NCBI RefSeq assembly: GCF_052425735.1
Contig: NC_135761.1
Span: 17,174,001-17,238,000 of the forward strand
Length of the DNA: 64,000 bases
Direction: 5' to 3'
DNA from: Oculina patagonica
Lineage: Eukaryota
Shown here: positions 8,025 to 58,813 of the stretch, piece after piece
Position numbering within the stretch: the first letter of the stretch is position 1
How the letters are laid out: each line of letters starts with the position of its first letter
Made by a program: the position numbers and the translations under genes
Notes under the pieces: model-generated
Told to the model about the DNA's origin: nothing
Database searches by the model: none
Seen by the model: only the letters and a program-made list of their open reading frames with translations

Positions 8025-8845
8025 CTAATTTACTGAGCTGCCATCGAAATCTATCAGCACGTATCCGTCAGCAGTATTCACTTCATTACTTGGTAATAAC
8101 ACATCAGTGTAATAGGACCCACCCCCTCCACCCTGCGCACCATATGATGAGGCGTGCACACCACCTCCAGAGTATCCACCTCCACCCCCTGGGAAAGATT
8201 TGTATGCCGCGCCACCCCCACCAAATCCACCAACTCCATCTCCCGTGCCTCCCATACCACCATTAAAAAAGGACTTCCCGGCCTGGTCACATGAGCGAGG
8301 AAAGGTACACGTTATTTTAAAACTACACTTTCCATCTCCTTTAAAACCACCCCCGCCCCCTGCGTCGTTTATCTCAGTAGCGCAAACTGACCCACCCAGA
8401 CCATTTGCGCCACCATACACGCTCCCATTCCTGCTTGTTTGGCCGTTGTCCCCATTCATTGCCGTAATCTGATTGCTTCCCCCACCCCCACCACCAGCTA
8501 CCGCAAGAAGCGTATTATCACTGAAAGCAACAAACGTGCCCCCACCCCCTCCCGCTCCGGAACTTCCGTTAAGGCCTTTCTGGCCGATTAGAAGGTGAAG
8601 TTTAATTCCCTCGGTAAGTCGTACCTCCCCACCTATAATTGCACCGTATCCCCCACTGGTAAGTGAGTCTCCGCCCGAAGCCCCTGCTACAGTTAACGTA
8701 TATAAGGCGGTGAATGGCACTGTCCAGATTTGTATCCCTTGGTTAAGTGTTACTGTCCCATGAAGAGACGTGTTGGCGTAGCCAGCCGTTGATATCGGTC
8801 CAGAGTTGCCCTGCATCCCAAGGGTGGTAAAACGGAATGACAATG
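8025..8845 (-). CDS. Gene A2 exon 3: ALK/LTK-type glycine-rich domain (exons 1-2 are at 38213-40143)
   Basis: Phase-1 acceptor ttttag|CA TTG TCA TTC, then 272 codons: FTTLGMQGNSGP...GIQIWTVP...AGASGG...LHLLIGQKG...GGGGGTF...AVAGGGGG...GGGGGYSGGG...DGYVLI*. The motif order matches the ALK/LTK GRD (PF12810-like). It stops without a TM segment. Confidence 0.9.
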
Positions 8846-9283
8846 CTAAAAAAAGAGAAAAGGAATAAAAATTAAAGTAAGGAACCTTTTTGATAGATCC
8901 ATAAAATTGTATAAAGATGTGCTTAGCGGGGGGGGGGGGGGGGGGTATCTTGGCAAATATTCAAAAGGATTTAAAAAGTCTTGTAGGAAGATTCAACAAA
9001 AAAATATACAATGGAGAGTTCATTACATTCACCTTAGAATAATTCTGCATTCTGCACGTAGGTTTCAATTTGTTAAAGAACACAGAAAATCTGCGAGTTT
9101 TTCAGAACTCGTTCTGGGGTATAAATTTATCACTTAGACCAGAGGTATTGCACATCTTACGAGTCAATTACGGTAACCATACTTTCTTCTTCAACTTGGT
9201 GACAAAGTCATGTCAGTTCAATTTATGCATGGAAAGCGATTTGTGTCCTTCTTGGGGTATCGGGATATTTAAAGCTTCCTGAT

Positions 9284-54727: not shown

Positions 54728-56040
54728 TTGAACATAATTTGTTTGCACAAATTCCCTTTCACCTAACAATTAATTCTTCAAACTCGGCTTATGTCTGCTT
54801 AGTTTTAAGTTTTTTTATTATTTTAACAACACTTAAAGTAGGTGCAAGATGCACATTTTGTCGGAACCTTTTATTCTTGTTGATTATTTCTTTTGCTAGC
54901 AGCCGACAGAAATTCGATATAAGGCAGGTTGCTAGAGTTTAAATCTCAGGTCTACTGGTGATACTTTTTGTTCTATTTGGAACTTTGCGCTGTTTACACT
55001 AATCTCACACTGACAGCGAGGAAAATGTGTCTATAAAAAGAACAAAAAACAAACATTATTGACGTGTGCGCATTGTACGATATATTCGTGTACAAAAGAA
55101 ATGTGTGCCGGGTTATTGCTCTCCTTACACGCTTGTAGTGCCTTGCGAAATTAATGTTCGGTTTCTTTATTAGCAACCGTTTTATTAGTACTGGCCCATA
55201 ATTTACTAGGGGTCATGTTTCATTTCTAAGTCTGACAGTAAACAATTGTCTGTAAAAACTTATTTCGTGTTTTTAATGATGCAGAAAATCACCCAGAGTA
55301 CTAAAGCGTTAGGCAGCCCATTCGATCAACCGAACATTTCAAGAACTACGGCAGCTTACCCTAGTAGCTTACCTCGCATCTCAGACTAACTTTCTAACTT
55401 GTTTGCTTACGCTGCTCCACAGAGATCACCTGACAATTATGCTGGGCTAACTATAGGCTGGGGCTTAGTGTGTTTGCTTGTTGACTGGGTCCATCATATT
55501 TACTTGATCCAACTATTAAACCAATTCAAGAAAGTAGTCGTGCCAATCGTTTCACTAGAACTGAAAATGCCGGACTAGAAAATCACACATAGAAATTACA
55601 GTTCCTTTATAAAGTCATCATATTCTAGGGAAGGGTGCAGAAAAAAGGCCTTTAATATACCGTTAATTATAGTTGGTGGTAGGTAAACGTTACTTCGTTA
55701 CTTCAGGTTGTTTCGATATCCATAAATTTACACTTCTAAGTCCATCACATGACGGCTTGCATGAATGTGATGAATTTTAAAGTAGTTTTACTTGAAAGTT
55801 GGGAAACAAATAGTACTTTTAAAAGATTATTTAAAGGTTAATTTGAACTTCTTCTGTCACATGCTTTCTCAATCTGACGTTTTTTTCTTTCACCTCGATG
55901 ATTAGCAATGTTTGAATCGTAGCAGCTGAATGCACAAGCTAAAATGTATGTAGCTTTTGTAAGAGCTAACAAAGAGCCATGTCAAGTGACTGCAAATCAT
56001 TTCAAAGCATTTTCACTTTGCGTTCAGAGATCTTTTCGAC

Positions 56041-58813
56041 ATGAACGACCTTAGTCTCATTTTGCTCCTTTTCGCTATGCTTCGAACCACTAACAGCCTA
56101 GAACAGCGTCATATTCTCGGCGCGCTCAAGACAGTTTCAAACCATAAACTAAATGGTCACCAAATTAAGGTTCTGAAAGGTTCTACGTTGTTATCATGTG
56201 CTCAGTCGTGCCTAGCGGAGCCCAAGTGCGTGTCCACGAACTTTGGAGTCCCGCCTGCGGAGGTTAAGCCTGTATGCGAGCTAAACGATCGTAGTGTTTC
56301 GTTGCTATCCAACGATGAATTAGAATACGCTGAAGGATTTGTATTTTCTCTCTATTCGGAGACGTTTCAAACTGCGGGCAGTGACATGAAGGTAGGGGTG
56401 ATTTACTTTAGGCTTCATTTTAATTAACGAAAACAAACGAGTGAGTTTCAGATCCACTCATGGTTTTTGCTTTGGATTTTAGGATGCTTACTGATGTTTT
56501 ATTGATAAAGATAATTTCTTGATCGATAACGTACCAAATCTTTTTCACTTAAGTAGCATGAGTTTAACCTTTCTCTTTCACGTAAATGTACGTTTAACAC
56601 TATCATTAAATGAACTGTTTAGACTTCACTGCATTACACTTAAACAAGAGAAAATTCGGGATTTTCTCTTGATGTTAACGCAAACTCAAAGTGCACTAAC
56701 TTATTAAATTGAACTAAAACATACCATTTACAATTGTTACTCGTGTTAAAAGTTAACACCAGTGAAGTACTATGCTTTTTTCTTTATTTTTTTTCTCTGT
56801 GCTTACTTTGAGACATTGAAGGATATTGTTTTTGTGTCAGGATGGCTGTAAACAGATAACTTGTCTCAACCAAGGCCACTGCTATTTCGACGGAGAAAAA
56901 GAACAATTTCGGTGTAAATGCATTCTTCCATGGACAGGAAACAGTTGCGAGACAAAGATAGGTAAAGCTTGCTTTTGAATGCTATAACTACTACGTATAC
57001 TTGCATTTGTACCACGAAATACAAGCGAGCTAGCCTGAGCGATCTTTGGCAACCCAGTAGCGGGTAAAAGGCGAAGTAAACCAGGCAAACTAGGATGCAA
57101 GGAATGGCGCAGTGATGAGAGCACTCGCCTTCCACAAATGTATCCCATGTATCTCAGTTAAATTTGTTGTTAGACCTCAGTCCTTGCTCTGAGGGCCTTT
57201 CTAATGTGAATCATGGGCCACAAGTTTGCAGTCGTTAGACTGTGGTATGTGCTACCCTTGTTAAAGGGTCTTAAAGAAATTTGACTTAACCATCGGCGCA
57301 GAGGAAGTTAACAAAACCCGAAAATGAGATTGTGCTAGAACTGTTGCTGTGCTAACGTCATGGAAAAATGGAAAATTTTTGACTCGAGGTAGCGAAACGA
57401 AACGAGCTGGTAACGAGTCCCTAGAATGGCTGTGAGAACAAAAACTCAAGATTTAGTTTCCCACCTGGTCCGATCAACACACCAGTAAAGCCAAGTTTAC
57501 GCAAGCAATTTTTATATGACAATTTTTGTGAAAATTTTTATTTGCTTGTGTAGATGCCAAAGTTTATGAGACAAATGTATTTGATGACAAGCTGGTGTGA
57601 GCTTTCATGTGACTAATCAAAGTTGCCACACAGGGACATTGCTCGTGTAGACGACTCGTCACATAAAATCTGTTAAATATTGCGTCAGCATATGTGTTCC
57701 CCAATCTCCTAAACTCCCACTGATCACTGTGCGCTCGTATCTCTTTGCGTATCTTTGCCGTCAAACGTCATTACTGGCGCACTTAGCTTTGGATTGCTGA
57801 CAAATGACTGTTGTGCAATCTACACGATCAAATATATTTGTCACAAAAATTGTCAGACATATAAATTGCCTGTGTGAACCAGGCCTAACTGTTATGCGTA
57901 AACAAAGCAATTACATAGTTGTCTTATTTCGTTCAACTCATTCAAGAAATAGTTTAAACCCTGAGTTCTTATGGTTTCTTTTTCCATAGATGTTTATTAT
58001 TACTTTACCACACTTGGTGCGACGGGAAGGTTCGGACCAAAGAACAACGCCCAGTACCAAGGTACGTCTTTGGAAGGAATCTCAGTACAAGACGGCATGC
58101 AAACATGGAATGTTCCCGTAACGGCTCAATATCACCTTGATCTGTGTGGAGCTTCAGGAGCGGACAACAACAACCTTTACACAAAAGGTGGCAGAGGAGC
58201 TAAGGTACAAGGAAGTGTCCATCTCCAGCAAGGAACACAGTTGACAGTTTTAGTAGGACAATTAGGAAAAGGAGGAGGAGGTGGTGGTGGCACGTTTGTT
58301 GTATTTGCTGATGGTGGCAGCCCGTTGGCTGTGGCTGGCGGTGGCGGTGCAGGTGATTTTGTTGATGGTGATCCTGGACAAGCCGGCAATAGTGGTAGCG
58401 TTAATACTGGCCAGCCAGGAAACGGAGGGATGGTGTGTGTGTCTAGAGGCAAGGTAACTGATTTACTCGGTGTGGGAGGTGGAGGAGGTCTCGTCACAGA
58501 TGGTCGATGCTATGTGAATTCCAATTGCAACAAGCCATGCACTGACAATGACGGAGGTAAATCGTTTAACTCAGGGGGAGAAGGAGGGTTCAACAAAAAC
58601 TCTCGATGTGCGGGTGGATTCGGTGGCGGTGGAAACTGTGGGGGAGGAGGTGGATACTCTGGTGGTGGTGCACAAGTCGATGGAAAAAGTAAGAATCTGG
58701 ATCTTCACGCCGGAGGAGGAGGGTCGTTTGTCCCTGGAGCTGATTGGACTGTTGTGTCTGGAGGTTGTTCCCCTGGAGACGGGTTTGCCACGTTTCAAAT
58801 AGTAGTGGACTAA
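56041..58813 (+). CDS. B2: tandem paralog of B1, PAN-EGF-GRD, ~431 aa
   Basis: Exons 56041-56391, 56841-56961 (DGCKQITCLNQGHCYFDGEKEQFRCKC...) and 57990-58813. Same phases as B1. The upstream region is also homologous to B1's. Confidence 0.92.

Follow-up and report, generated by a model that had tools for sequence, protein, structure and literature searches.

Why should a coral carry a group of neighbouring genes for the ligand-binding domain of the ALK and LTK receptor kinases, when no kinase motif is found in their vicinity, and what might such proteins do? The question is raised by a region of the Oculina patagonica genome on contig NC_135761.1 (forward-strand positions 17,174,001 to 17,238,000), here called the window, by which we mean the whole stretch of 64,000 nucleotides (nt) that was analysed and to which all coordinates refer. 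Paralogous genes of three exons each are clustered there, and their products combine a PAN (apple) domain, an EGF-like domain and an ALK/LTK-type glycine-rich domain (GRD). These proteins are kinase-less and, judged from their sequences, apparently secreted, and we propose that they probably serve as soluble, two-headed extracellular binding or bridging proteins.

The gene structure was read directly from the DNA. Exons were located from the open reading frames (ORFs) of the window, by tblastn and by a scan for the cysteine pattern, and their junctions were read for GT-AG. The window is AT-rich (GC 0.29-0.44) and contains eight loci, comprising four complete genes (A1, A2, B1 and B2) and four partial copies (A3, A4, A5 and B3); an earlier sequence-only reading of the region had counted only the first four. 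Five long GRD ORFs are present, at 8025-8843 and 47531-48349 on the minus strand and at 27800-28723, 53530-54384 and 57971-58813 on the plus strand, together with seven PAN and seven EGF exons, and the order is always PAN, EGF, GRD on one strand. Each complete gene consists of three GT-AG exons, the first encoding a signal peptide and the PAN domain, the second the EGF domain, and the third the GRD and the stop codon. Exon 2 is 121 nt long in all seven copies, while exon 1 ends in phase 0 and exon 3 starts in phase 1 in every copy with readable junctions, and this one-domain-per-exon plan is identical in two diverged subfamilies, A and B. The products are approximately 430 amino acids (aa) long (431-436 aa in the four complete genes), and none of these four genes is in contact with an assembly gap. 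The spliced translations of A1 and B1 are identical to the deposited proteins ACROYT_G012747 (P0001) and ACROYT_G012750 (P0140), and the deposited model of B2 (P0141) differs only in starting 12 residues late, which leaves it without the signal peptide. The three-exon model of the sequence-only reading, with its shared intron phases, its EGF domain ahead of the GRD and its PAN domain in front, is confirmed.

The third exon provides the link to ALK and LTK. All five long GRD ORFs match the Pfam family PF12810 (ALK_LTK_GRD), with expect values (E) from 1.5e-11 to 4e-05. A1, A2, A5 and B2 lie above the curated cut-off of 24.5 bits (29.7-45.2 bits; taken singly, 38-45 bits for A1, E 6.3e-10 for A2 and 29.7 bits for B2) and the B1 exon ORF, at 24.2 bits, falls just below it. 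A profile built from the coral family matches human ALK with an E of 9.5e-28, LTK with 3e-24 and SCD-2 with 1.2e-17. AlphaFold2 models were made for A1, from a 37-sequence alignment, and for B1. The A1 model has a predicted local distance difference test score (pLDDT) of 81.6, with values above 90 in the GRD, 75-89 in the PAN domain and 31-52 in the EGF region, and the B1 model scores 88.5, with all three domains confident. When the two models were compared with the PDB in Foldseek, the first 21 matches were all TG/GRD domains of ALK, LTK or SCD-2 (best E 4.6e-16, template-modelling (TM) score by target 0.59-0.72, probability 1.0, identity 25-30%), and among the reviewed UniProt (Swiss-Prot) models the GRD fold is common only to these three proteins. 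On the strength of these models, exon 3 is predicted to encode a TG-type GRD, in which a TNF-like beta-sandwich is combined with a glycine lattice, in agreement with the domain assignment made in the sequence-only reading. The glycine runs, compared across 34-37 homologues, and the core strands are invariant; the connecting loops are variable and contain insertions and deletions.

The two domains that precede the GRD are identified by a mixture of sequence and predicted structure. Against a PAN_1 cut-off of 21.4 bits, B-type exons score 24.1-25.6 (B1 24.2, B2 25.6) and A-type exons 17.6. The PAN part of both the A1 and the B1 model matches the factor XI/prekallikrein apple domain, MANEC and the HGF N domain with a probability of 0.99-1.0, and also the apicomplexan apple lectins (TgMIC4) in Foldseek against the PDB. 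The first exon is thus predicted to have the same apple fold (probability ~1.0) as the PAN/apple proteins factor XI, prekallikrein, the HGF N domain, MANEC, MIC4 and the SML-2 lectins, with the difference that the coral proteins have a single apple domain and have it fused to a GRD. In exon 2 the six-cysteine EGF pattern is present in seven of the seven copies. Scores against the Pfam EGF cut-off of 21.5 bits are 20.8 for B and 16.0 for A, and the exon-2 part of the B1 model matches the EGF domain of Notch-1 and an isolated EGF (TM score by target 0.80, probability 1.0). For the A-type PAN domain and the EGF domains, it is the cysteine pattern and the predicted fold that support the assignment.

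Whether these exons make up whole genes depends on how their reading frames end. Membrane segments were sought as 19-residue windows with a Kyte-Doolittle mean above 1.6, and in the proteins no hydrophobic stretch was found other than the N-terminal one; the C-terminus is polar or beta-strand, and the proteins terminate 5-10 residues past the last GRD strand. No HRDxxxxN, DFG or APE kinase motif occurs in any frame of the window, in which an isolated GxGxxG-like match at 62012 is the only one of its kind, and no kinase Pfam match was obtained in any homologue scanned. It is extremely unlikely that the exons belong to larger membrane-receptor genes, with transmembrane and kinase exons lying further downstream. 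Splicing past the stop could in principle occur, and RefSeq does draw one 29-kb intron in the window, but the stop codon lies at the homologous position in five of five GRD exons and none of the five has a donor-like GTRAG in its last 60 nt. Moreover, the next exon after B1 on the plus strand is the PAN exon of B2, and the DNA beyond A1 and A2 is unrelated. An AATAAA or ATTAAA motif is found 14-1051 nt past the stop, within ~290 nt in A1, B1 and B2, at 672 nt in A2 and at 1051 nt in A5. The gene models of six other species (Desmophyllum, Acropora palmata, A. millepora, Montipora, Stylophora and Exaiptasia) likewise end directly after the GRD. Furthermore, a contig of 1754 nt, from one sequencing run of Stylophora, contains a whole PAN-x-GRD protein as an uninterrupted ORF, followed by a stop codon, ~400 nt of 3' sequence and an AATAAA near the end, as in a mature mRNA. 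The claim that every gene stops after the GRD, free of transmembrane segment and kinase, is thus supported, by evidence that is indirect where Oculina itself is concerned.

A comparison with ALK, LTK and C. elegans SCD-2 (PDB 7NX1, 7N00, 7LRZ and 7LIR) reveals both a shared module and a different protein around it. The Pfam family is the same, as is the predicted fold with its conserved glycine runs and TNF-like strands; these receptor domains are extracellular, as the coral proteins would be, and in both groups an EGF-like module neighbours the GRD. However, the coral proteins have no transmembrane helix, kinase, MAM or LDLa domain, their identity to the receptors is only 25-30%, and they carry an N-terminal PAN/apple domain. 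The order of the parts also differs, running PAN, EGF, GRD in the corals, whereas in ALK/LTK the GRD precedes the EGF-like module and, in ALK, MAM and LDLa domains lie upstream. The ALK/LTK fold binds cytokines, according to the titles of PDB entries 7N00, 7NX0 and 7NWZ. Could the coral proteins be soluble decoys or co-receptors in a cytokine pathway of this type, with the free GRD capturing the ligand of a membrane-bound GRD-kinase receptor? The fold, being that of the ligand-binding TG domain of ALK/LTK, speaks for such a role, which we nonetheless regard as highly unlikely. A kinase-linked GRD was found in none of 46 mid-size relatives (a survey that did not extend to a search of coral genomes for GRD-kinases), the kinase-linked GRD clusters of the ESM Atlas are chiefly chordate, and the low identity to ALK/LTK points the same way. 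The ALKAL cytokines, furthermore, are vertebrate proteins.

The family is under purifying selection. All exons are open, those of the partial copies included, and the ratios of nonsynonymous (dN) to synonymous (dS) divergence are 0.06-0.30, with A1 against A2 giving 0.06 for the PAN exon and 0.27 for the GRD exon, and A5 giving 0.27-0.29. Lineages A and B stand head-to-head, the pair has been duplicated in inverted orientation (23547-28732 against 53300-47522), and A has been duplicated again as a palindrome centred on an assembly gap. The head-to-head spacer may be a shared bidirectional promoter. A1 and A2 form a mosaic, in which the PAN exon has a dS of 0.055 (99% amino acid identity) and the GRD exon a dS of 0.32 (78% amino acid identity), suggesting gene conversion of the 5' half or an exchange of the GRD exon between paralogues. 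DNA identity within the inverted duplication declines along the unit from 98.8% to 94% and then 86%. The mosaic and this gradient together argue against uncollapsed haplotypes. It is hardly credible that the cluster is largely an assembly artefact of that kind, or a collection of decaying pseudogenes; the three assembly gaps, the 518-bp repeats that are 100% identical, the one orphan exon and the one truncated copy would fit such an explanation, but the inverted copies are too divergent for alleles, every exon is open and constrained, and comparable clusters occur in Stylophora and Nematostella.

A maximum-likelihood tree built from 20 full-length proteins places A and B in separate clades, each with support of 100/99. 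The A clade contains proteins of Oculina, Desmophyllum, Stylophora, Acropora and Montipora, and the B clade those of Oculina and Montipora. Because each clade mixes robust and complex corals, the A/B split would be older than the split between these two groups; judging from the tree, both lineages were in place before crown Scleractinia arose, and the Oculina copies inside each are recent. Genes of this architecture, with the same exon plan, are also present in Stylophora, Acropora, Montipora, Desmophyllum and Nematostella, and PAN-GRD proteins lacking the EGF domain are found in Exaiptasia and Acropora. In Stylophora pistillata (LSMT01000092.1, 1781-21379) a minus-strand B gene, with PAN, EGF and GRD exons, stands head-to-head with a plus-strand A gene, and a second plus-strand A gene, whose model has a 9-kb first intron, follows the pair. 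The conservation of this divergent B/A pair suggests a shared promoter and perhaps a joint action of A and B. A homologue adjoining the Stylophora locus has a COLFI-like piece in place of the EGF domain (P0135). In Nematostella vectensis (OW051997.1, ~13.10-13.14 Mb) two tandem PAN-EGF-GRD genes, of 419 and 428 aa, have the same three exons. One of them has been named automatically 'keratin, type I cytoskeletal 9', and a 737-aa gene with two GRDs adjoins. Further PAN-EGF-GRD genes lie elsewhere in the Oculina genome, and many paralogues are present per genome. The sequence-only reading had described a lineage-expanded family; expanded it is, and under purifying selection, but the wider distribution means that it is not special to this lineage.

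Beyond this architecture, clusters in the ESM Atlas and the AlphaFold database show cnidarian GRDs with other partners (EGF only, PAN only, or PAN-fn2) and bacterial GRDs with Ig-like, FG-GAP, DUF4215 or Hint modules, the kinase-linked clusters in the ESM Atlas being mainly chordate. The other cnidarian GRD proteins (PAN-GRD, PAN-fn2-GRD, EGF-GRD and PAN-COLFI-like-GRD) belong to the same superfamily and are secreted-looking, kinase-less and often clustered, but the linker module varies among them, whereas A and B are two orthologous lineages with a 121-nt EGF exon. A library-wide phmmer search returned 3,696 representative clusters at E<=1e-3. Its best non-cnidarian matches are giant multi-GRD proteins, one with a CHU_C-type Ig domain and a type-IX secretion tail and another with a phage endosialidase-chaperone domain, and among 46 mid-size relatives none has a kinase and nine have a PAN domain. 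Viral models matching at E<=1e-3 number 123, many of them virion or tail proteins, and the coral GRD also has matches in PHROG; tblastn against a phage genome collection gave one weak match only, probably owing to the low-complexity filter.

Some of these bacterial and phage proteins are among the closest known comparisons. Certain bacterial surface proteins carry between one and seven GRDs (P0249, for example, has Ig_7/CHU_C, several GRDs and a type IX secretion system sorting tail). They are likewise kinase-less and extracellular, with the GRDs fused to adhesion-type modules, although they are giant, multi-domain and prokaryotic and lack PAN and EGF domains. The tip of the cyanophage Pam3 tail fibre gp24, which is TNF-like and glycine-rich, has been proposed to recognise the host receptor, and its similarity to 7LIR has been noted (PMC9608196). 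Both gp24 (PDB 7YFW/7YPX) and the polyglycine tip of S16 gp38 resemble the coral proteins in being free-standing binding modules with no signalling part. Phage fibres differ in forming trimers on an N-terminal alpha-helical shaft and in needing a chaperone, and the coral proteins have PAN and EGF domains in the shaft's place. In Foldseek the solved phage structures are matched weakly (E ~1e-2, TM score 0.2-0.3).

The proposal that the coral GRD is closer to those of bacteria and phages than to that of ALK was considered and dropped as unproven. In its favour, giant bacterial or phage-like proteins are matched by phmmer with 41-47% identity and scores of up to 328 bits, and one PHROG profile scores above the Pfam family. 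Against it, composition-adjusted BLASTP gives only 33% identity over 224 aa and 52 bits to a bacterial domain and nothing to the one phage-like protein compared, glycine composition inflates the hidden Markov model scores, and the family profile matches human ALK at ~1e-27. The description of the third exon as an 'ALK/LTK domain' in the sequence-only reading is supported by the fold match, but is too narrow given the occurrence of the GRD in bacterial surface proteins and in phage virion and tail proteins.

What, then, might the proteins do? The sequence-only reading had named opsonins, decoys and matrix components among the candidate roles. The most economical reading is that of a disulphide-rich, two-headed binder: wherever the fold has been characterised its role is one of binding, and apple domains bind proteins or glycans. 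In this model the proteins would be released from the cell in soluble form. The GRD would hold one partner on its TNF-like face and through the variable loops that project from a rigid glycine lattice, in parallel with the way in which ALK/LTK hold their cytokines and Pam3 gp24 is proposed to hold its receptor. The apple domain, a kind of module that binds proteins or glycans, would take up a second partner, a protein or a carbohydrate, and the molecule as a whole would bridge or tag extracellular targets.

Several points weigh against this model. The transcript evidence belongs to a homologue in Stylophora rather than to the Oculina genes themselves, and the putative signal peptide was judged from hydropathy and position alone. 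The folds of the GRD, PAN and EGF domains are predictions; by sequence the A-type PAN domain and both EGF exon types fall below their Pfam cut-offs, and the EGF region of A1 is modelled poorly, as its pLDDT of 31-52 attests. Variable loops, moreover, would be expected of any glycine-scaffold protein and do not prove a recognition role. A structural function would also draw on such a scaffold. As structural parts, outside the cell, of the mucus, the mesoglea, the cnidocyst wall or the organic matrix of the skeleton, the proteins would use the lattice as a building block and the PAN and EGF domains for cross-linking, and their composition (~19% glycine, 17-18 cysteines), the many paralogues per genome and the automatic names given to relatives elsewhere ('glycine-rich cell wall structural protein', 'loricrin-like', 'keratin-like') are in keeping with this. 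We consider it unlikely, since the GRD is predicted to be a compact globular fold and not a repeat polymer, the automatic names reflect composition only, and no coral matrix or mucus proteome mentioning the family turned up in literature searches that were narrow.

The two-headed binder can be taken a step further, to a more specific and distinctly less likely proposal. The secreted TNF-like and polyglycine-lattice module might act, encoded in the germline, in the recognition of microbes or symbionts, the PAN domain being a second, glycan-binding head and the A and B products cooperating, and a horizontal transfer of the module into or out of animals would be conceivable. If this long shot were true, a cnidarian recognition molecule would use the same kind of module as phage tail-fibre tips and bacterial surfaces.

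The partial copies bear on how the locus has been assembled and annotated. Runs of N lie at 10089-10588, 29936-30067 and 37528-38027 (Table 1). On the plus strand, the sequence that leads into the third of these, the gap at the centre of the A3/A4 palindrome, reads as a polypyrimidine tract, an AG and then 11 nt (37517-37527) that equal the first bases of the A-type GRD exon of A5. Upstream of this acceptor, 230 nt agree at 95% with the intron that precedes A5, and a further 210 nt at 99%, so that the A5 upstream intron (8846-9283) and A3 intron 2 agree at 95-99% identity. A3 is not truncated, because the acceptor and the beginning of its GRD exon can be read before the gap. The view that A3 and A4 are truncated pseudogenes was rejected for A3 on these grounds, and both copies are under purifying selection. 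A3 and A4 share 96% DNA identity, with a dN of 0 and a dS of 0.11 in the PAN exon. Since the gap is expected to contain two GRD exons, its true size should exceed the nominal 500 nt.

Table 1. Coordinates of the genes, partial copies and related features of the cluster (window positions; exons in the order PAN / EGF / GRD)
Feature	Position	Strand	Remarks
Gene A1	25496-25858 (signal peptide + PAN) / 27057-27177 (EGF) / 27897-28723 (GRD + stop)	+	Complete, 436 aa, GT-AG
Gene A2	50622-50260 / 49084-48964 / 48351-47531	-	Complete, 434 aa, GT-AG
Gene B1	52404-52751 / 53128-53248 / 53555-54384	+	Complete, 432 aa, GT-AG
Gene B2	56041-56391 / 56841-56961 / 57990-58813	+	Complete, 431 aa, GT-AG
A3	33815-34177 (PAN) / 35546-35666 (EGF) / GRD from 37517	+	11 nt of GRD exon before gap at 37528
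A4	40143-39781 (PAN) / 38333-38213 (EGF)	-	Inverted twin of A3; intron 2 reaches gap at 38027, no GRD exon in place
A5	8025-8845	-	Single A-type GRD exon at end of first contig, acceptor and stop both intact
B3	24438-24091 (PAN) / 23719-23599 (EGF)	-	Truncated copy of B1
Spacer B3/A1	24439-25495		Between head-to-head pair; A2/B1 counterpart at 50623-52403
Assembly gap	37528-38027		Centre of A3/A4 palindrome; both GRD exons expected there

No PAN or EGF exon was found upstream of A5 before the gap at 10089, in a search up to E 10. RefSeq model LOC144649759 (P0002; window 8025-40143) joins the PAN and EGF exons of A4 (40143-38213, minus strand) to the GRD exon of A5 (8845-8025) across an intron of ~29 kb, which spans all three gaps, the whole of gene A1, A3 and B3. 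This long intron is likely due to mis-scaffolding or to an over-stretched model, and A5 may, given the intron similarity, be the misplaced third exon of A4. These findings amount to a correction of the assembly: a gap interrupts one gene, and a single RefSeq model has been drawn across 29 kb and three gaps. A3 intron 2 contains an insertion of ~1 kb (36240-37293) with inverted ends of ~145 nt (36240-36382 against 37156-37293, 84% identical), which looks like a foldback or MITE-type (miniature inverted-repeat transposable) element; the intron upstream of A5, although 95-99% identical elsewhere, lacks it.

In the assembly B3 is a genuine truncation, broken off by a repeat inside intron 2. It is 98.8% identical to B1 over 23547-25090, the homology stopping at 23547 inside that intron, and no GRD remnant was found downstream of B3 or A3 even at E 10. 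Two copies of a 518-bp repeat, at 21695-22212 and 23031-23548, are 100% identical, and the second begins exactly at the B3/B1 break; each holds two copies of a 108-nt unit built from a 44-nt palindromic motif. The 311 bp beside this repeat (22221-22531) recur at 11565-11875 with 99% identity. The gene-poor interval from A5 to B3 contains fragments of a non-LTR (long terminal repeat) retrotransposon, at 13483-14823 and 19521-19913 on the plus strand (RVT_1, E 1.2e-22, and a zf-RVT piece). A minisatellite at 40852-41316, with a 20-nt unit in ~24 copies that match at 69%, gives rise to spurious Ser/Pro/Leu-rich ORFs on the minus strand (40828-41412) with no Pfam match. Low-complexity stretches at 9428-9724 (minus strand) and 43917-44342 (both strands) encode proline runs followed by lysine/asparagine runs, and may be the tails of one repeat family.

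To our knowledge, all work on the TG/GRD fold in animals concerns its part in cytokine binding by the oncogene receptors ALK and LTK. Full-text literature searches yielded no description of kinase-less animal GRD proteins or of the PAN-EGF-GRD architecture, for which the sequence-only reading had likewise named no functional description. The family is not mentioned in a tissue-transcriptome study, a Hydractinia atlas or a heat-stress study, and its accession numbers were not found in the part of the Stylophora cell atlas supplements that was covered. The automatic names of many members, taken from ALK, LTK, keratin or loricrin ('ALK tyrosine kinase receptor-like', 'receptor protein-tyrosine kinase', 'keratin', 'loricrin-like'), are misleading and amount to a systematic mis-annotation.

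The sequences are already public, and what they hold is a real, conserved and uncharacterised family that is widespread in corals and sea anemones. In these proteins the GRD is separated from kinase signalling within animals, as a module with a life of its own in early-branching lineages, and they provide a tractable set of small proteins with which to ask what the GRD fold binds when no kinase is attached to it.

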